From NCBI GenBank assembly GCA_907165135.1, contig OU015568.1:9486001-9550000 (forward strand): DNA of 64,000 bases, read 5' to 3'. Position numbers and translations under genes: made by a program. This document shows, one piece after another, positions 20,353 to 30,268 of the stretch. This stretch comes from Oikopleura dioica. Taxonomy: Eukaryota; Animalia; Chordata. Every line of letters begins with the position of its first letter. The stretch's first letter is position 1. The notes beneath the pieces were generated by a model. It saw only the letters and a list, made by a program, of their open reading frames with translations. It did not search any database and was not told the origin of the DNA.

Positions 20353-23300
20353 ATGGCAGCTTGCTACGATTACTTTTACATCGTTGGCCCTTCGCCGGAA
20401 ACGAATAGTCCTCGAATTCTTGCTCACGTGCCTAGATCGGTTCCGGGAAACACATGGGACAATGAGGCACATCTTGCGGTGTTATCACTCCCGCTCGGCT
20501 GCAGAGAGTTGAAGGAAAACTCGACTCGATCATGTCATTCGTTTATCTGGAAAAAGGAAGATGGATCATCTTCTTGGGTGCACGCAATGGAATTTTGGAA
20601 CCCTTCTGGAGGCCTAAGCCACGCGCTTGCGCTAATTTCAAAACGAGCGTTGATTCTTTGCTCTCATAAAATTCTTAATCTCATCTACGATCTTGTCTTT
20701 ATATCCGGCTTGCCCTTGGACTCGCTGCAGCAGCTATTGAACAATGTCTTTGCTCTGAAAGAATCGTCCAGTATCACCTCGTTCCAAGTCAATTGCATCG
20801 ACAGTATCGTCATCCCGCCTCGTTATTCCTCCTCAATCTCGCTTTATAAAACTTTCGAAAAAGTCCCAATTGTCAAAATTGTGAAAATCATTTGCTCGTT
20901 GCTGCTCGAACGACAAGTCGTCATCATCTCATCCAACATGGAAGAACTCGCTTTACTGACAGAGTCGTTAAAATTCCTCCTCTTTCCTTTCCCTATGCCA
21001 GACACCTACATCCCCTTGCTACCTTGCATTGCCGGAGCAGAGAGCTATCTTGAGGCGCCGATTCCGTATATCATGGGAATTTATACTCAGTCCATGACAC
21101 CTGGTTTCTTGGCAAACTTGCTGCTCGAATCGAGCGGTCGAACAGTTTTTGATATGGATGATGGAACCCTGATCGTTGACGAAACTCTTCCTAAATTTCC
21201 CTTAGAAGACCAAGTCATCGATCTCGCCAGAAGCCGGTTCAACGAAATCAACAAAAAAGAACTTGAGCGATTGAAAAAGCGCGAGAATAGCTTCTCTTTG
21301 CATGGAAAATCCATTCCTGAAGACAATGACGACTTGCTAGATGAAATTCACAATGAAGCTCTTTCGTTGCCCTTCAAAGTCGCCTTCGCATTCATGTTTG
21401 CTGGTTTCGAAAACTTTGTTATCAATTCCAACGAATCGTCGGACATAATTCGATCTCGTGAGACTTCAAGTCTTTTTGACAAAGTAGCATTCTTATCCGA
21501 GCAGCCGGAAAGTCACATGGCGTTCTTGTCAAATTTCCTCGAGAGTCAACCGTTTGCTGAATTCATGAAAGAAAAAATCCGTCTTGCGGAGCTTTGCAGG
21601 GAAAGTAGTCTTCCGAGCACGATGCATCACGTGGTCAAGTTCGAGCAGATGATCTATCGATTCCAGAGTTTTCACTCGACTCTGGATGGCAGTGAAGAGC
21701 TTCCCCTTTCATCTCTTATTGCTCAGGAACCATTGTTCAAGCCAAAAGTGAAGAAGGAAAAAGTGGAAATTGAAATCAATGACACACCATCAACGGAATT
21801 TCCATCTCTGTATTCCGCCGAATTGTTTCATCTTCTAAGCATCAATGATAAGCTTGTACCTGACGACGGATTAACTCCAACGCCCGGTACAATGCCGTTT
21901 ACTGGACCGGACGATATGTTTTCAAAAGCCGATCCTGGGACGAATAGCGTTGATGAAAGCTCTGTAAATCCCGAAATCATGTTTCAAGAAAACGTCAAAT
22001 TCATCGAACGGGTCGTTTCAGACGTGAACAAGCTGATTAAACGCATCCTTCTCGGCCGCTTGGGACGAGAAACCGCGTCCGAGTGGGGCCATGAAGTCAA
22101 GTACTGCCACCAAACCGAAGAAAATGTCCAAATCGGGCAACTTTGTGATCTGCTCGAGCGTATTTTCAGACATGGAAGCAAGTCAAAACGCTCTCAATCT
22201 GCTCTCTGGAGTTTTCTCCTTAGTTTCAGAGAATATGCGCCTCCAGAAACTCCTCAAATAATAACCGCTGAGGATAACCAGCAAGGTGTGTTTCGTTCAT
22301 TCGCGAAGAAAATCGCCGGTCTGGAGTACACTAGAGATATCAAACCAGTTGTTCGGTCGCCTGTTGCTGATATGAATACGGTTCTAAAAATGACAGGTGA
22401 AAGAAAATTAAGGATTGGAATATTTAATTTCTCCAGGAATTCAATCTGATCGAGGTCGAGTTCGAGCATGGATACGACTTGCAGTTGAAAAGCGTCTTCT
22501 TTCTCATCATTTGAGTTGTATAACTTCAAATCCTGTGATCGTCAATGAACACTACAAATCGTACGGACTGATACAATGCAGGGATAAATGGGAAGAATGC
22601 TTGAATTATTTTCTGACGCTTGGAAAGACACAGGTTTTGATTTTTCTTGAAACTGTTATGAATTATTTTCATAAGGATGTCGAATTTAATTGTTTTACCG
22701 ATGGTTTTCCCGGAGCAACGATAAAATACCGCATTTGGATATTTCCCGGAGAAAGTCTTATCGGTATCTCCGAAACTACTGCGAACATTTATGTGAAACT
22801 CGTTGGCGAAAAGGATGAAACTCCTCGAATACCGATTCATAACAAAACTACCCTAGAAGTGGAATTTGAATGCAATAACTTGGGACGCCTGGTTGTTCTC
22901 GCAATTGGTAATAGAAAACCATTGAATGAAAAAAAATTACTTAAAATTAGGACACGATAACTCGGGGATGTTCCCTGCTTGGAAGGTGAAAAAAGTGCTA
23001 GTTCGGAACGAGGTAACTGGAGCTTTTTGGAACTTTCCATGCGGCAAACCGATTGGAAAATCAGTTGGCGATGGAGCTCTTGAGCGAATTCTTACTGCAG
23101 AAAGGTTGGGATTGACGATGTCGAAAGAGCGTAGAGTCGTCTCGATTTCTACAAGGAATGGTTGAATGAAATTATTTTTTTTTTGCTTGAGCATGTGACT
23201 TTAGGAAAAAGAGAATGAGCATGAAAATCTTTGCTTGATTATTAGAATAGATTGGGGGAATGATATTTAATTCTTTTATAAAACCAGGAATAGGCAAACA

Positions 23301-24071
23301 ACACAAGGCGCCCGCTCCAAAGAAAAGTCTAGAGACGACCTTCAGAAGAACTTTCATCTGACCGTAAACAAAATACAAGTCCTCATGAACATGGAACGCC
23401 CCCAAGCCCAAGCGATCAATGGTCTACTTTGTGGTGAAAATGGACTCGTTGAAAGTAAAATCACTCTTTTGAGAAAATCGAATGTAATCGTCTTAGATTT
23501 TTCGGACATCTTTGTTCACGAAATGAAAACAAGTCGACTGAGAACGAACTTTGCTTGGGATGCGATTTACCACACAGCGCAGCAGATCATTGCGGAGCCG
23601 ATTCACTCCGGAGATCCTGAAATCCGCTCTAAATTCCTGGACGTATTCAATGAAGTTCAAAATAAATGCTCTGACGGAGGAAAAGAGGGCAAATTTCAGG
23701 TTCACAATTCATTGAAAATTTATTGTAAAAGAGAGTTTTCAAGACATTTGTATGCGTCGTTTTGAGAGACAAAGTGATGTCACAGTTTATGAAGATTGTT
23801 AGAGATTGCTGCAACGAACTTTACTCATCGTCAGCTTTTCTTTACGAGCAATCAACTGTGATTTTCCTTGAAGAAATGCTCTCTTATCTAGCCACAGTGA
23901 AAGTTCTTGCTGTTGATGACTCGTTAACAAAGGTGAAAGGAGCACTTCGCCATGGCATGTGTTATTAATGTTAATTTCTAGGGAATCGAGAAAGTTGAGC
24001 TGAAAACACCCGACCTGACAACTTATGAAAGTCCGATACCGCTAGAGCATATGCCAGAATCTTCCGTTTGA
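20353..24071 (+). CDS. DENND5: DENN-RUN-PLAT-RUN Rab GEF (Rab6-interacting protein 1 type)
   Basis: DENN (SLLLERQV, YIPLLP...YLEAPIPYIMG, FDKVAFLSEQPE), RUN (LCDLLERIFRHG, DRGRVRAWIRLAVEKRLLS), PLAT (NIYVKLVGE, NLGRLVVLAIGHDNSG...W), second RUN (LLCGENGLV, GKEGKFQ) and terminal LTKGIE. Confidence 0.86.
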
Positions 24072-24236
24072 AATCCATTTAAACTCTTTTCTTCATTTTT
24101 TTCTTTTCAACGCAACTTCAAAACCAACCTTCTCATCGTGCAATTTTTACTGACCTTTGCTTCTTCAAAAAACTCCTGTGATTAATTCTACTAATACAAT
24201 TTCATATTACACATCTAAAAAGTCCTAGCATGGAAG

Positions 24237-27200
24237 ATGAACCGATTAATATTGCGCTCTAGCTCTAGAATGTCGTTTCAGAGCGCCAGTGCTGTTAGAA
24301 GCCGACTTCCGACTTTTAACAAAATTCCGATCGATCTCGCTACAGAGGCCAAGCTCTTGAATTTCAATCAATTGGCTACTGTTGACTTGCGAAATGCAGT
24401 TTCAGCAGTTGCGGCGGCGAAAAATAAGAAGGTTCAAAACTTCAAGCTTTTTGAAGTGCTTGAATGCAGTTTTTCTAACATGTTTATTGTGATGTATCTG
24501 TTTCTGTTGTACTTTGTGAAGAAAACTAACCAGTCTTCTCATAAGTTTCTTGTAAAGTTTTTCTTTTTTGAGGGCTTTCTTTCAGACAGTTGGATTGTAC
24601 GAAGAAGTCCTCATCGACTGGCTCAAGAAGTTCGACGCTCATCTTTCCGACCGAACATTCTTCGTTGCGGAACGCCCAACAACTGCTGACTACGCAGTTT
24701 TCTCGGAACTAGCCGTTGCATTTTCAACCCAGTACCCAGAAGATCGCATCAAAACCGACTTCGCCAATCTGCATCGTTGGTTTCGAACAGTTCTCGTGCA
24801 GAACTCCGCCAAACTCGGATCGTTTAGATATTACACCCCACCACCAGCGGGAATGAACACGAATATCACCGCCAACGAGGTGCGAACGCAATTTCTTGAA
24901 TTTTTCAAGGAGCGTGAGCACCCTTATGTCCACTCGAGCTCGACCATCCCTCATGATGATCCTACTCTTCTCTTTGCCAACGCCGGTATGAATCAATTCA
25001 AGTCGATCTTCGTTGGAACGATTGATCCATCTTCCCCAATGGCCAAGCTCAAATCCGCTGTTAATTCTCAAAAGTGCATCCGAGCAGGAGGAAAGCACAA
25101 CGATTTGGACGATGTCGGAAAGGACTCTTACCATCATACATTTTTCGAAATGCTGGGAAGTTGGTCTTTCGGAAATTACTTCAAGAAAGAAGCAATCGCT
25201 TGGTCCTTCGAGTTGCTCAACAAAGTCTGGGGAATTCCAGCTGATCGTCTTTACGCCACTTACTTTGAAGGAAATCCCGAAGCTGGACTCGAGCCCGACA
25301 ATGAAGCCCGTGAAGAATGGCTAAAATATCTCCCTGCAGATCAGATTCTCCCTGGAAACGCGAAAGATAATTTCTGGGAAATGGGTGACACTGGCCCATG
25401 TGGCCCTTGCTCAGAGCTTCATTACGATCGAATCGGCGGACGAAACGCAGCCAGCTTGGTAAACATGGACGATCCAGATGTCCTTGAAATCTGGAACTTG
25501 GTCTTTATGCAGTACGATCGACAGCCTGACAAAAGTTTGATTCCCCTTCCCGCCAAATCAGTCGATACTGGAATGGGCCTTGAGCGAGTTGTCTCTGTTT
25601 TACAGGACAAACGCGCAAACTACGACACGGACATGTTCTCTCCATATTTTAAGAAAATCCAGGAGCTAACCGAAACCCGCGCATATACCGGTCTTTTCGG
25701 CGCGGAAGACAAAGACGGTGTCGACATGGCCTACCGAGTGCTTGCTGATCACGCTCGAACTCTTTCCATCGCTCTCGCCGACGGTGGTCGACCAGATAAC
25801 GTCGGTCGAGGCTACGTCCTCCGAAGAATTCTCAGAAGAGCAATTCGCTATGGTCACGAAAAATTGAACATGAAGGTCGATGATTTTACCGCTCTTGTCG
25901 ATGTCGTTGTTGAGTCACTCGGCGACGCTTTCCCAGAGCTCAAGAAAGATCCTGAGTCTACCAAAGAGATCCTCAAGGAAGAATGGATTCAATTCATGAA
26001 GACTCTCGATCGAGGGCAAAAAATTCTAGAGCGAAAGATCAAACAGCTCAATCTCACTGACAAGCTTCCTGGAGACGTTGCCTGGCTTCTTTATGATACC
26101 TATGGCTTCCCATTAGATTTGACCACGCTTATTGCTGAGGAACACGGACTGACTCTATCCTGTGACGAATTTGAAGAAGAACGCCAGAAAGCGATCGAAC
26201 GATCGAAGGGAGCTGGTGCTGGTGTTGATGAAAGTATCAATTTAGATGTCCATGCTCTTGCGAAGCTCCAGGACGATGGTGTTCCAACAACTGATGATTC
26301 GCCAAAGCAGAACTACGACGCAAACGAAGCTGGTGAATACTCTTTCAATTCGATCAAAGCAAAAGTTTTGGCCCTCCGATTCAACAAAGAATTCCACCAA
26401 AATTGTGACAGCTGTGAAGTAGGAATCGTCTTAGACAAGACGAATTTCTACGCTGAGCAAGGTGGTCAAATCTATGACTTGGGCTACTTTTCCCGAGAGA
26501 ATGATGATGACTTTGAGTTCAACGTCAAAAATGTACAGATTCGAGCTGGATATGTTCTTCATGTAGGAACTTTAGTTGGTAAATTGGCAGTTGGTGATGA
26601 ACTTGTTCTCAATATCGATATTGAGCGACGAGTGAACATTATGCCAAACCATACTGGAACGCACGTTCTCAACTTTGGCCTCAGATGTGTCCTTGGTGAG
26701 AAATTCTATTTATCCTCTCGATAACCTTTTATAAGGCGAGGCTGATCAGAAAGGATCTCTTGTTGCTCCCGAACGACTGAGATTCGATTTCACCGCAGGT
26801 GGAGCTCTCAAGCCAGCTCAAATCAAACAGGTCGAAGAAATCTGCAATGAAGTAATCACCCGAGGTGGAGCTGTCCACTGCCAAGTCTCTCCACTCGCTC
26901 AGTCAAAAGCTATTCAGGTCGGTACCCGTCGTTGTAATCATTTTAAATCGAATTTAGGGTCTGCGAGCTATGTTCGACGAAACTTATCCAGATCCAGTTC
27001 GGGTTGTTTCAATCGGTGTTCCAGTTAATGAACTTCTTTCGAATCCCACATCTGGTGCTGCTGACAAGACATCAGTGGAGTTCTGCGGCGGTACTCACTT
27101 GAGAGACATTTCTCATGCAAGAAAACTCATCATAACTACGGAAGAGGCCATCTCAAAGGGTATCCGACGAATGATCGCGGTCACTGGTGCTGAAGCAGAG

Positions 27201-28019
27201 AAAGCAGATCGACAGGCTCAGAGATTAGGGACGGTTGAAATTGAATTTATTTGTTACTAAAATTTTTCGGGACGCAAAGATCATTCAACTCAAAATAGAA
27301 AAGGATGTGAATGAGCTAAAGGTGGAAGTCAAAGAAGCAATTCAAGCGAAAAACACCGCGGATGCTAATCAACGTGCAATTACTCTTGGGTAAGTAATGC
27401 TCGGAAACGCTCCATTTTAAATTTGCTGCAGTTATTCATTATTTTTAGAAAAACAATGGAAGTTGCACCGATTTCTGCGTGGAAACGTGCTGAACTTGTT
27501 GATGCTGTGAAGAAGGCAAAGATGGAGATTGTTCAATATGAACAGAAGGTATGATTGTAATATTGACTAAATTCATTCTTGATTACAAATTAGGTGCAAA
27601 AAGAAAGAATCGCCAACTTAAAATCTGAAACCGAAAAGCGAATCGACGCCGGAGATGTTGCCGAGCCAGAAGTACTCCTCCTTGATGCAGGCAGCAACAA
27701 CAAAGTTCTCAATGAAATTCTCAAACTCTACGCAAAGAAATCTCCGAAGTCGCATGTGTTACTCTTCAGTGCGGATCACACCGCCAAGAAAGTCCTTTGT
27801 CTCGCTCAAACTCCCAAGGTCTTGACTATATTTATTTCTCATTCTAGCGTTTTTAAGGGCTCAACATTGAAAGCAAACGAATGGGTCGGTTCAATTAGTC
27901 CTCTTATCGATGGACGAGGTGGTGGAAAAGACGTTCAAGCGCAAGCGTCGGGTAAGAACGTTGCTGGGCTCAATGATGCCCTTGCTAAGGCAAAGGAATT
28001 TGCTGCAGCGAATCTTTAA
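24237..28019 (+). CDS. AARS1: Alanyl-tRNA synthetase with an N-terminal GST-like extension and a possible mitochondrial presequence
   Basis: [73 protein letters not shown], editing HTGTH and CGGTH, C-Ala GRGGGKD. Intron 24432-24585 links the N-terminal exon in frame. Confidence 0.95.
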
Positions 28020-28255: not shown

Positions 28256-30268
28256 TTACAAAGTTTCGGATTTATTATCTTCTTGTTTGAAAGGGTCGTC
28301 CACGGCTGCCTCAACAGATTCTTTCTCCGGAACGTCAACTTGTTTCCTCTGAGTTCTAAAATGCTCCACAATGCCAATAAGGATGAGAAATCCTCCTAGA
28401 GCAAACATCGTATATTGAAGAGAGCTTCCAATCTTCATTGGTTTTACGGAGGCCTCATAAAGCGATCGGGCAGTGTCGTCGTCAAGCTATAAATTTGTTC
28501 TTGAACTATAAATTTGCCTTTTTGCAAATACCTTCATGGTTTCGTTTGACCAGAAAATCGGCCATACAACTGCGTCTTCATTTTTGACTTGATCAAGAAT
28601 GCTAGAAAACGATCATTTCAACTACCTAGGTTTAACATCGTGCGTACCTAATTCGTTTATCCTTCTTGACCAAAAAGTTGATCTGGATCTTTTTTGAGTT
28701 GAACGTAATTGCACCAGAATTCAAGTCGTATCCGTTGAAAGAAGTATGCTCAGACTGAGAAATTTTTATTCATTGAAAATACTGGTGACTTACATTTCCC
28801 CACTCAAAAAATGGAGTTTCGTGGGGATTCATCCCTTCAATATCTTCTCTCCATCGGAGTGAGCCGCCGGAAAAGTGCGGACCTAAATTCGATGTGATTT
28901 AGTTTTTAATTTTCTTTTACCAGTGGCAACTGCAGGCGCTCCCATTTGACACTGATCCATCATGTGAAGGCCATCATACTTTTCGCACCATCCTTCAGGA
29001 AGATTTGGTGAACAGTAACATCTGTTTTCCGGTCGGCTTTTTGTGTAAAAAACATCTGGCGGGCCAAACCAAACTTCCGACGGGATCTTGTAGCCATCAC
29101 CTTCAAGATTCACTGTAACTTTTGCAGGAACCATGAAAACTGTTCTGCAAAGATCAGAGATGAAAAAATTTAGAGTGTCTTCCTTGCGAGTGTCAGTGAA
29201 AATTGATTGTCCATCTGTACCCTCGATTCTATTACAGTAATTGACTTTGTCTTCGCCGTACCAAGGCGCAAGGTCCGTTTTTCCTTCCCACTCTAGAATT
29301 TCATTCACTCGGTAAGCGCAAGTTGTTTGTCCATCTAAGCAGCTCTGTCCGTTTCCGTTTCGATTTTTGAAGTGATCCCAGCCACTTCCTGGTTCTTCGA
29401 CGGTGCCGTTCTTTGGCTGAAAGAGACCGTAGGTGAGGTTAATGAAGATATCAGAAAGATCTTCTAGGATCGGTTTGATTGGCGAGACCGGGGCTTGATC
29501 AGCTGCCCGATCGGCGAGGTTTTGGCCGAGTTGTTTGAAAATATCGTCTTCAAAGCCAAAAAGAATCTGGTCTACGGTTTTCTCGTCGTCGTATAATTTT
29601 GCTCCTGCGTTGACAAACACGTCTTCAGCGAGAATCATCAACCAATTCTCAAGGTTTTCTTCGTAGCACTCTTTTGGCGCTTGGAACCCGACACAATTCT
29701 GCTTTGAAAGCGCAAAGTTGCAGTCAGCAGTTGGTTCTGAAATACCCTTGTCGCATTCGATGATGATTTCGTTGTTTTTCCAATCTCGTTTTCGCGAGAT
29801 GTCGGTGACGATTCCATGGATGGCGTTTGCAACAATATTTGCAGTCACTGGTTTATCGTCTTTCTTACAGTCTTCACAGGAATACTCTTGGCTCCATGTA
29901 AACAATCGCGTTTGTCGGAAAGAATAATAAGTTGAATTTTCATAATCTCCATTATTCTGTTCGATTTGATCTCTTCCATAATTTTCCACGTAAGTGTAAG
30001 GCCCCTTTTGGACAAAAGAAAGTTTCTCATCCGTGCCGGCGACATATTCTGCGCCATTTTCCAGACTCCAAAAGTAGAATTCGTAGAGCACAAGAGGACT
30101 TGGATTTCGGAGATTTTCGTAAAGAATCGTTCCATTTTTCATAACATTATTTTTCTCCAGCTCCGATACTGTCACAATATCAATAAGTGGGTACATAACA
30201 GACGCTATAATTATGAAAAGCAGTCCGGTGCCGCCGAAGACTGCTCTTCGGTCACAACAGCAACCCAT
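28256..30268 (-). CDS. CD36/SCARB (class B scavenger receptor) family protein
   Basis: MGCCC + TM1, FYFWSLEN, FVQKGPYTY, GTDGQ, FFISDLCR, CYC, GPHF, KKIQINFLV, PIFWSNET and a C-terminal TM; four GT-AG introns. Confidence 0.86.

Follow-up and report, generated by a model that had tools for sequence, protein, structure and literature searches.

Is an alanyl-tRNA synthetase (AlaRS) with a GST-like domain at its N-terminus made by Oikopleura dioica, and if so, what would the added domain be for? Eukaryotic synthetase complexes are held together by GST-like domains. A reading of the window (the whole 64,000-nucleotide stretch of O. dioica DNA analysed here) from its letters alone, below called the sequence-only reading, had proposed that an open frame ahead of the usual AlaRS start encodes a GST C-terminal helical domain, acquired in this lineage by an enzyme that normally lacks one. 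The last point agrees with reviews on GST-bearing synthetases, which name only GluRS/EPRS, MetRS, ValRS and CysRS and place no such domain on AlaRS.

The quoted peptide, its frame, the intron and Met 24853 are all present in the window. The phase-0 GT-AG intron at 24432-24585 joins the in-frame upstream peptide to AlaRS as had been described, and the public annotation uses the same exon 1-exon 2 join: its protein P0002 (CAG5086037.1, 1108 aa) is ~100% identical to the window and starts at the second Met (24270), not at 24237. The enzyme is of the cytoplasmic type, with a PF01411 match (E 1.3e-204) and with PF07973 (tRNA_SAD) and PF02272 (DHHA1) on the full-length products, and the locus is the sole alanyl-tRNA synthetase gene of O. 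dioica. Its features are as follows (long form, product that includes exon 1; SL, spliced leader).

23982..24071, + strand: end of the upstream gene, which encodes a DENN domain (Pfam DENN/dDENN in related loci): its final coding exon with the stop codon, TGA 24069-24071.
24129..24160, + strand: conserved intergenic block holding a pyrimidine run and TACTGAC (24148-24154), which resembles a branch point.
24230..24262, + strand: short upstream ORF in another frame, its AUG 7 nt before the exon-1 AUG.
24237-24431, + strand: AlaRS exon 1, 65 codons, ending in KNKK.
24237..24332, + strand: codons 1-32 of exon 1, a presequence-like leader (composition, amphipathic moment, conservation).
24333..24431, + strand: second part of exon 1, predicted to form the GST_C-like domain's first long helix (AF2 model, alignment).
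24432..24585, + strand: intron 1, also the outron (GT-AG, phase 0, 154 nt).
24586..24852, + strand: start of exon 2; in the long form it codes for what is left of the GST_C-like domain, in the SL form it serves as a 5' UTR without AUG (Pfam, SL joins).
24853..26695, + strand: canonical AlaRS Met and remaining exon 2, catalytic core (Pfam tRNA-synt_2c, E 1.3e-204).
26736..28019, + strand: AlaRS exons 3-8 including the stop (P0002 exon chaining, mapping of cDNA L001).
26736-26917, 26958-27233 and 27280-27389, + strand: exons 3-5, as in the public model.
27449-27548, 27594-27818 and 27858-28019 (stop included), + strand: exons 6-8, as in the public model.

At the exon 4/5 border the public model and cDNA L001 disagree. 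Exon 2 opens with TVGLYEE at 24586 and is free of stops up to the AlaRS start, so that 267 in-frame bases precede Met 24853. Intron 1 has a weak donor (GTTCAA), ACTAAC at 24525-24530 and the acceptor CTTTCTTTCAG, and no intron of the AlaRS gene is longer, the rest having 39-59 nt against its 154 nt.

The appended part is the ~110-residue helical half of a GST-like domain of the eEF1B-gamma/ValRS type, as the sequence-only reading had it. Specifically, the 89-residue extension in exon 2 matched Pfam GST_C with 35.7 bits (cut-off 20.7; E 1.1e-8), Arc1p_N_like with 30.3 bits (cut-off 27) and GST_C_2 with 28.6 bits (cut-off 24.9), while exon 1 alone gave no Pfam match. The best PDB match by sequence was 5dqs (eEF1B-gamma; E 4e-5). 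An AF2 model computed with alignment A1 was all-helical with a pLDDT of 86.5 (35 for the single sequence, residues 1-260, without alignment), and its best Foldseek match was again 5dqs_A (TMq 0.74, rmsd 1.8 Å, 123 columns), a fold match that is partly built in since eEF1-gamma relatives make up much of A1. The exon-1 helix 23-49 of this model packs on the exon-2 helices (pLDDT 88-92); it aligns with the corresponding helix of the eEF1B-gamma relatives, and the loop that follows it is shortened.

The broader description as a GST-like domain holds for the helical half and fails for the thioredoxin-like half (GST_N), which is absent: exon 1 is without Pfam match and has only helices in the model, and further exons would not fit in behind the stop of the upstream gene at 24071. 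The EF1G domain (PF00647) was not matched in the AlaRS protein and is present in the relatives P0025, P0026, P0027 and P0038. The sub-type of the fold known from eEF1B-gamma and ValRS stands here, too, N-terminal on a synthetase; the present case differs in that the carrier is AlaRS, only the helical half is found, EF1G is missing and the domain is optional at the mRNA level. The Arc1p_N_like and GST_C matches also constitute a likeness to MetRS, EPRS, AIMP2, AIMP3 and Arc1p (5bmu, 5y6l, 4bvx), and the alignment profile of the AlaRS head matches AIMP3, EPRS and MetRS chains, more weakly than eEF1B-gamma. The domains of the MetRS/EPRS/AIMP/Arc1p group, however, retain the thioredoxin-like half (one of the two known interfaces), which the AlaRS head does not.

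A search of 1.84 billion representatives yielded one other GST_C-AlaRS, P0023; a relatives search from P0023 returned only P0023 itself, and the ESM Atlas only plain AlaRS clusters. To judge from these collections GST_C on AlaRS is lineage-restricted, in line with the proposed lineage-specific acquisition. P0023 (transcript L013) comes from a more distant SL-bearing species, in which the mRNA reads SL|A-ATG and continues with GST_C and AlaRS in one ORF; its GST_C part matches 5dqs with E 5e-15, and its N-terminus is acidic and not presequence-like. Because this more distant species makes the fusion from an SL-AUG mRNA, the GST_C-AlaRS fusion predates O. dioica.

Which mRNAs leave the locus was examined in transcript contigs. 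The SL (17-31 nt of the 40-nt O. dioica sequence as published, PMC6883708) is joined to ACAGTTGG, i.e. to position 24586, in five transcript contigs from five samples (L001-L004, L016), all of them from a sister O. dioica lineage with ~83% nucleotide identity to the window. An in-frame TAA lies within the SL, and each SL-joined contig has the MNTNIT Met (24853) as its first ATG. The SL join at 24586 thus strips exon 1 along with all AUGs ahead of MNTNIT, and such mRNAs encode plain AlaRS. For the window's own lineage the SL evidence is limited to one metatranscriptome contig (X1, 305 nt, 99% identical to the window) that ends 3 nt from the acceptor. Trans-splicing at 24586 is accordingly shown in the sister lineage, and we infer it for that of the window.

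AlaRS is co-transcribed with the upstream DENN-domain gene as one transcription unit. In RNA contig L011 the two last introns of the upstream gene are absent exactly at their GT..AG borders, and the contig runs on through AlaRS exon 1, a retained intron 1 and exon 2; compared with intron-bearing genomic contigs it is 95-99% identical. Two further contigs considered as RNA evidence (L014, L015) proved genomic. An exact search of the JGI contigs for the cis-spliced exon 1-exon 2 junction gave 0 matches, and the protein fragments of 79-250 aa that include exon 1 all read into the intron, none being joined to exon 2. Three species-labelled oligo-dT RNA runs had 0-2 partial reads over 1.5 kb and hence provide no junction count. 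Three other routes to a product were ruled out: retention of intron 1 as a coding route (its 154 nt shift the frame and are unconserved), exon 1 as a small ORF of its own (the read-through tail is unconserved) and trans-splicing at the internal TTTCAG (24279), after which no in-frame AUG would remain.

Evidence for the upstream coding part comes from comparison among lineages. Frame, donor and peptide are conserved across five or more divergent lineages of O. dioica, which is beyond chance. In exon 1 dN/dS is 0.10-0.20, in the extension 0.12-0.17 (AlaRS core, 0.016-0.03); counted by codon position, differences number 4/4/20 in exon 1 and 13/10/32 in the extension. A 9-nt deletion in the second part of exon 1 (L006/L012) is in frame, and the exon-1 ATG and the GT donor are conserved. 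Intron 1 has diverged, and its length is not divisible by three; it can be taken as non-coding because its length varies by lineage (154/146/135/145 nt) at a p-distance of 0.33-0.38. We consider this strong evolutionary evidence that purifying selection acts on exon 1 and the extension as protein. Transcripts trans-spliced ahead of the MNTNIT Met, which had been set against a fused domain beforehand, are found for the short form (the five SL contigs at 24586), which goes half way towards refuting that domain, yet the extension is still under purifying selection. The long form is supported by selection, conservation and annotation, and the short form is seen in RNA. Taken as a whole, the sequence-only interpretation is partly supported.

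The 267 nt before Met 24853 have also remained free of start codons: 12 sequences have 0 ATG in any frame (core windows of 267 nt have 5.4 on average), and the probability of this absence is 0.04 under synonymous resampling and 0.10 under dinucleotide shuffles. Moreover, dS is lower in the extension (0.6-0.9) than in the core (1.6-2.3).

We suggest that a single acceptor (24586) has two uses, with cis-splicing and SL trans-splicing in competition for it. Trans-splicing discards exon 1 and leaves a 5' UTR of the SL and 267 AUG-free bases, with 24853 as first AUG; its product is an ordinary AlaRS, which would be the major form. Cis-splicing would use the weak donor at 24432 to join exon 1 to exon 2, a step proposed from conservation and annotation (no such RNA was found), and would give a minor long form composed of a basic, Ser-rich leader of ~30 residues, the ~110-residue GST_C-like domain and AlaRS. 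Such a two-isoform design is likely in our judgement. Upstream elements may bear on it: the block at 24129..24160 is kept in all lineages while its flanks have diverged, and it may support an SL acceptor ahead of exon 1. The short upstream ORF may keep the long form scarce; in other lineages its place is taken by ATGAGATGA, which overlaps the main exon-1 AUG.

The long form, we propose, is the mitochondrially imported AlaRS, with the GST_C module inherited and still constrained. Its leader (the first 30-32 residues) has 6 basic and 0 acidic residues, 8 Ser/Thr and an amphipathic stretch, and is disordered with low pLDDT in the AF2 model; it is conserved among the lineages with changes mostly in third positions, and one lineage has Asp at leader position 19. 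It is called presequence-like from its composition and has no cleavage motif. O. dioica is reported to be without nearly all mitochondrial tRNAs and without mitochondrial aaRSs except those for Gly, Phe and Met, the mitochondrial AlaRS thus having been lost (PMC11384887). Given this loss the long form is probably the imported enzyme. We know of no use for a folded GST_C domain in mitochondria, nor, to our knowledge, has the route of cytosolic synthetases into O. dioica mitochondria been described. With these points weighed together, a mitochondrial role of the long form via its presequence-like leader is an evenly balanced proposal, and the explanation in full (two forms by splice choice, the long one imported) is one that we favour by a modest degree.

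The sequence-only reading had seen in the added domain a means of docking. Docking of the long form to eEF1B or to a multi-synthetase complex would not exclude the mitochondrial role, nor the reverse, and we regard it as possible but doubtful. Somewhat more doubtful is the reading that gives docking the whole weight, in which the long GST_C-AlaRS would be cytosolic, its head docked to eEF1B or to a rebuilt multi-synthetase complex and its leader a flexible tail. The closest relatives of the head are eEF1B-gamma GST-like domains, which have been solved with eEF1B-alpha and eEF1B-delta (5dqs, 5jpo), and in deuterostomes ValRS needs its GST-like domain to bind eEF1B (PMC4394549). In addition, the GST_C domain is under purifying selection, the P0023 fusion is made from an SL-AUG mRNA and has no presequence-like N-terminus, and AlaRS belongs to the synthetase complex of T. 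brucei. However, the assembled mRNAs skip GST_C, so that most AlaRS would be undocked; the fold is present only as its helical half, with the shortened loop; and some imported AlaRS would still be needed, for which the locus has no other candidate leader.

That the extension is coding-constrained although only SL-joined mRNAs were found could also be reconciled by a non-AUG start on the SL mRNA, e.g. at the conserved TTG 24595, which would yield a truncated GST_C-AlaRS without exon 1. The frame is open from the TAA of the SL onward, and yeast ALA1, which starts at upstream ACG codons, is a precedent. We nevertheless find this very unlikely, as it leaves unexplained why exon 1 is constrained in the matching frame, why the donor is conserved and why the indel is in frame; in addition, the context of TTG 24595 is poor and the exon-1 helix is integral to the bundle as modelled. 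Still less probable is that O. dioica makes no long protein, exon 1 being an annotation artefact and the extension a fusion relic kept as 5' UTR/outron: cis-spliced RNA is absent from the collections searched, L011 retains the intron and the low dS of the extension relative to the core hints at constraint at the RNA level, but a relic would have decayed, whereas dN/dS is 0.1-0.2 with a strong third-position bias across lineages at dS 0.6-0.9, the frame is intact without a stop, the indel is in frame and ATG and GT are conserved.

The favoured explanation, splice choice with import of the long form, has parallels in other organisms. Arabidopsis AlaRS has two AUGs and, like yeast ALA1, a single gene serves cytosol and mitochondria. 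These resemble the O. dioica locus in that one gene encodes an N-terminal extension ahead of the Met that begins the cytosolic enzyme. They differ in that translation starts at alternative sites on similar mRNAs and the extension is a short presequence with no folded domain. T. brucei IleRS is dually targeted by alternative trans-splicing (PMC3273800); there, too, one synthetase gene is combined with mitochondrial tRNA import and the site of SL addition decides on the presequence. In T. brucei two SL acceptors compete, whereas in O. dioica the SL would compete with cis-splicing at one acceptor and the proposed long form carries a folded domain.

With a module of the eEF1B-gamma type on AlaRS, conserved in two or more divergent larvacean lineages, the list of GST-bearing synthetases grows longer. 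What the public gene model (1108 aa) describes is probably a minor product. It is a speculative and rather unlikely extension of our data that larvacean AlaRS is toggled by the cis/SL choice at one acceptor between a free cytosolic form and one with GST_C and an import leader, with the same design on other synthetases, as part of a lineage-wide rewiring that would replace the lost mitochondrial synthetases and remodel docking. Finally, splice competition at one acceptor would be a concrete mechanism for the supply of mitochondrial AlaRS and, if true, a chordate counterpart of the trypanosome solution.

Established at this AlaRS locus are an mRNA that is trans-spliced to the spliced leader (SL) and encodes plain AlaRS, and a coding-constrained long open reading frame (ORF) in which a GST_C-like domain precedes the enzyme. 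The public Okinawa O. dioica annotation matches the window, and its model P0002 (CAG5086037.1, "Alanine--tRNA ligase", 1108 aa) aligns with ~100% identity over eight exons (24270-28019). The 267 bases before the usual AlaRS start (the MNTNIT Met, 24853) are in open frame and reach back to the AG at 24585, and a phase 0 GT-AG intron of 154 nt (intron 1, 24432-24585) joins this extension to an upstream exon of 65 codons, counted from ATG 24237; on re-reading of the window the coordinates, peptide and intron of an earlier sequence-only reading were all correct. The start codon candidates for the long form are 24237 and 24270, and public databases carry the long protein solely as an automatic model. 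At the border of exons 4 and 5 (27229-27297) P0002 also includes a stretch of eight residues, GTIIQLKI, that sister-lineage cDNA lacks, which reflects either a mis-set annotation splice site or a lineage difference. On the opposite strand just 3' of AlaRS lies a Cys-rich ORF of 461 aa (28883-30268, -).

Five SL-joined contigs from five samples, all from a sister lineage and not the window's own, define the trans-spliced transcript: the intron-less 3244-nt sequencing-run contig encoding P0001 (a close relative of P0002 with 80% identity over the extension), three contigs from JGI metatranscriptomes and one more (L001-L004 and L016). Each has a GTCCGATTTCGATTGTCTAACAG-type 5' end of 17-31 nt followed directly by ACAGTTGGATTG, which corresponds to window position 24586, and the GTCCGATTTCGATTGTCTAACAG-type sequence is the 3' terminus of the SL published for O. 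dioica (PMC6883708). The SL carries an in-frame TAA and MNTNIT is the first ATG in each contig; these mature mRNAs lack exon 1 and therefore should yield ordinary AlaRS. For the window's own lineage we found one 305-nt metatranscriptome contig (99% identical), which ends 3 nt from the acceptor, and the species-labelled RNA runs have almost zero reads on the locus.

The intron 1 region is also transcribed together with the gene upstream:

20353-24071, + strand, upstream gene encoding a DENN/dDENN-domain protein

In the RNA-derived contig L011 the last two introns of this gene are missing, cut out precisely at the GT..AG borders; genomic contigs that match it at 95-99% identity retain them. Further on, the contig runs across the intergenic region, through exon 1 and the unspliced 154-nt intron, and into exon 2. 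Since L011 spans both genes the DENN gene and AlaRS are co-transcribed, and they make up an operon-like unit whose spacer is unusually long (stop 24071, SL acceptor 24586). Intron 1, being unspliced in L011, is thus either removed late or acts as an outron.

Aligned genomic contigs, which represent at least five divergent lineages of O. dioica, argue that the long ORF is coding. Conservation covers exon 1 and the extension, and the intron and intergenic DNA have diverged (p-distance 0.28-0.38, many indels); intron 1 is 154, 146, 135 and 145 nt across lineages, no multiples of three. No lineage has lost ATG 24237, the GT donor or the reading frame, and in one of them exon 1 is shortened by a 9-nt deletion that stays in frame. 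The dN/dS values are 0.10-0.20 (exon 1), 0.12-0.17 (extension) and 0.016-0.03 (core), and differences fall mostly at third codon positions (4/4/20 in exon 1 and 13/10/32 in the extension). In-frame AUGs able to start the long ORF are present in exon 1 only, and intron retention breaks the frame; therefore selection would act only via a cis-spliced mRNA or via non-AUG initiation, the latter being a much less plausible route to constraint on the extension. On these grounds the long form would be NEVERTHELESS real, its own RNA and 5' end not being among the transcripts found. The exon 1-exon 2 junction has zero matches in the JGI contigs, and the protein fragments containing exon 1 all read through into the intron, none joined to exon 2, so the RNA expected from the sequence-only reading was not recovered from either source. 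Trans-splicing upstream of MNTNIT, which that reading had taken to count against a fusion, does occur in the five contigs joined at 24586, but the long ORF is still coding-constrained. Between lineages dS is 0.6-0.9 in exon 1 and the extension (24237-24852) vs 1.6-2.3 in the core (24853-26650), which suggests an additional RNA-level constraint on the dual-use region, although saturation in the core may contribute to the difference.

The 267-nt stretch has no ATG in any frame in 12/12 sequences, and equal-size windows in the AlaRS core have at least 3 (mean 5.4); the probability of zero ATG is 0.10 with dinucleotide shuffles and 0.04 with synonymous codons resampled and the protein fixed. This is the pattern expected where coding sequence doubles as a scanned 5' UTR. 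Intron 1 has a weak donor (GTTCAA), is three times longer than the other introns of the gene and has the best pyrimidine tract and CAG of them all, features that fit competition between cis- and trans-splicing. Just 5' of the exon-1 AUG an out-of-frame AUG, its position kept in all lineages, opens a 10-codon uORF in the window (24230-24262); elsewhere the uORF is ATGAGATGA, its stop overlapping the main AUG, in other lineages.

As to the added domain, the 89 residues encoded by 24586-24852 score above the curated thresholds of Pfam for GST_C (35.7 bits, cut-off 20.7, in agreement with the sequence-only assignment), Arc1p_N_like and GST_C_2; exon 1 by itself has no Pfam match. By sequence, the extension as a whole comes closest, among solved structures, to the GST-like domain of human eEF1B-gamma (5dqs_A, E 4e-5). 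Only 26 matches came out of the 1.84 billion cluster representatives searched, and the longer ones scanned are eEF1-gamma or multi-GST proteins. An AlphaFold model built with an alignment of relatives is confident (pLDDT 86.5), with residues 1-20 disordered and the exon-1-encoded long helix (P0002 residues 23-49) packed on the exon-2 helices. Foldseek ranks eEF1B-gamma GST-like domains at the top (TMq 0.74, rmsd 1.8 A), a match partly built in by the many eEF1-gamma sequences in the alignment. The thioredoxin-like half is absent, and with the stop codon of the upstream gene at 24069-24071 it could not be fitted in. The module, shared between exons 1 and 2, therefore corresponds to the helical C-terminal half of a GST-like domain of the eEF1B-gamma/ValRS type, and the domain type first proposed holds for this helical part (Pfam, 5dqs_A, model). 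The extension's relatives also included an unusual GST-synthetase fusion, P0031 (673 aa, metagenomic), a histidyl-tRNA synthetase with complete GST_N and GST_C at its C-terminus. The metagenomic P0022 (642 aa), P0024 (338 aa) and P0027 (526 aa) are eEF1-gamma-like but have their GST modules duplicated, with GST_C-type domains in tandem sets of two or three and, in one of these proteins, an EF1G domain as well.

The reviews consulted give GST-like domains on GluRS/EPRS, MetRS, ValRS and CysRS and name no AlaRS, consistent with the initial view that AlaRS normally lacks one. Full-text literature searches gave no paper describing such a domain on AlaRS and none mentioning both Oikopleura and the multi-synthetase complex. 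In a related species, JGI contig L013 (922 nt) has 28 nt of the same SL, then A-ATG, and encodes a single ORF, P0023, comprising a GST_C domain and the AlaRS N-terminus. Its GST_C is fuller and eEF1B-gamma-like (5dqs_A, E 5e-15), with an EFKYCQERAKF tail, and its identity to the O. dioica protein (48% overall) is far higher over the AlaRS portion than over the GST portion. The GST_C-AlaRS fusion is accordingly older than O. dioica and, with several ATGs within the GST region and an acidic N-terminus, it looks constitutive and not mitochondrial in the P0023 species. Two additional searches for relatives found no further GST_C-AlaRS.

With respect to function, the leader from Met 24237 is conserved and modelled as disordered; its first 30 residues include 6 basic, 0 acidic and 8 Ser/Thr residues and an amphipathic stretch, and by composition alone it may resemble a presequence. 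Klirs et al. 2024 (PMC11384887) report that tRNA-Met is the only tRNA kept by the O. dioica mitochondrial genome and that, of the mitochondrial synthetases, all but those for Gly, Phe and Met have been lost from the nuclear genome; some AlaRS must therefore enter mitochondria. Trypanosomes meet the same need for IleRS by alternative trans-splicing (PMC3273800), and the locus has no leader other than that of exon 1. Given the basic leader, this need, the sole leader and the IleRS precedent, we favour import as the candidate role of the long form, with roughly an even chance of being right. Docking of AlaRS through its GST-like head, raised earlier for eEF1B or the multi-synthetase complex, is a putative role that we consider possible if rather doubtful: relatives of the domain bind eEF1B-alpha and eEF1B-delta (titles of structures 5dqs and 5jpo), eEF1B binding needs the ValRS GST-like domain (PMC4394549), the fusion of the sister species shows no presequence-like character, and selection on the domain is well above the needs of a spacer. 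The AlaRS case combines known kinds of arrangement, a GST-appended synthetase and dual products via alternative SL use, in which the long form would be the mitochondrially imported AlaRS.
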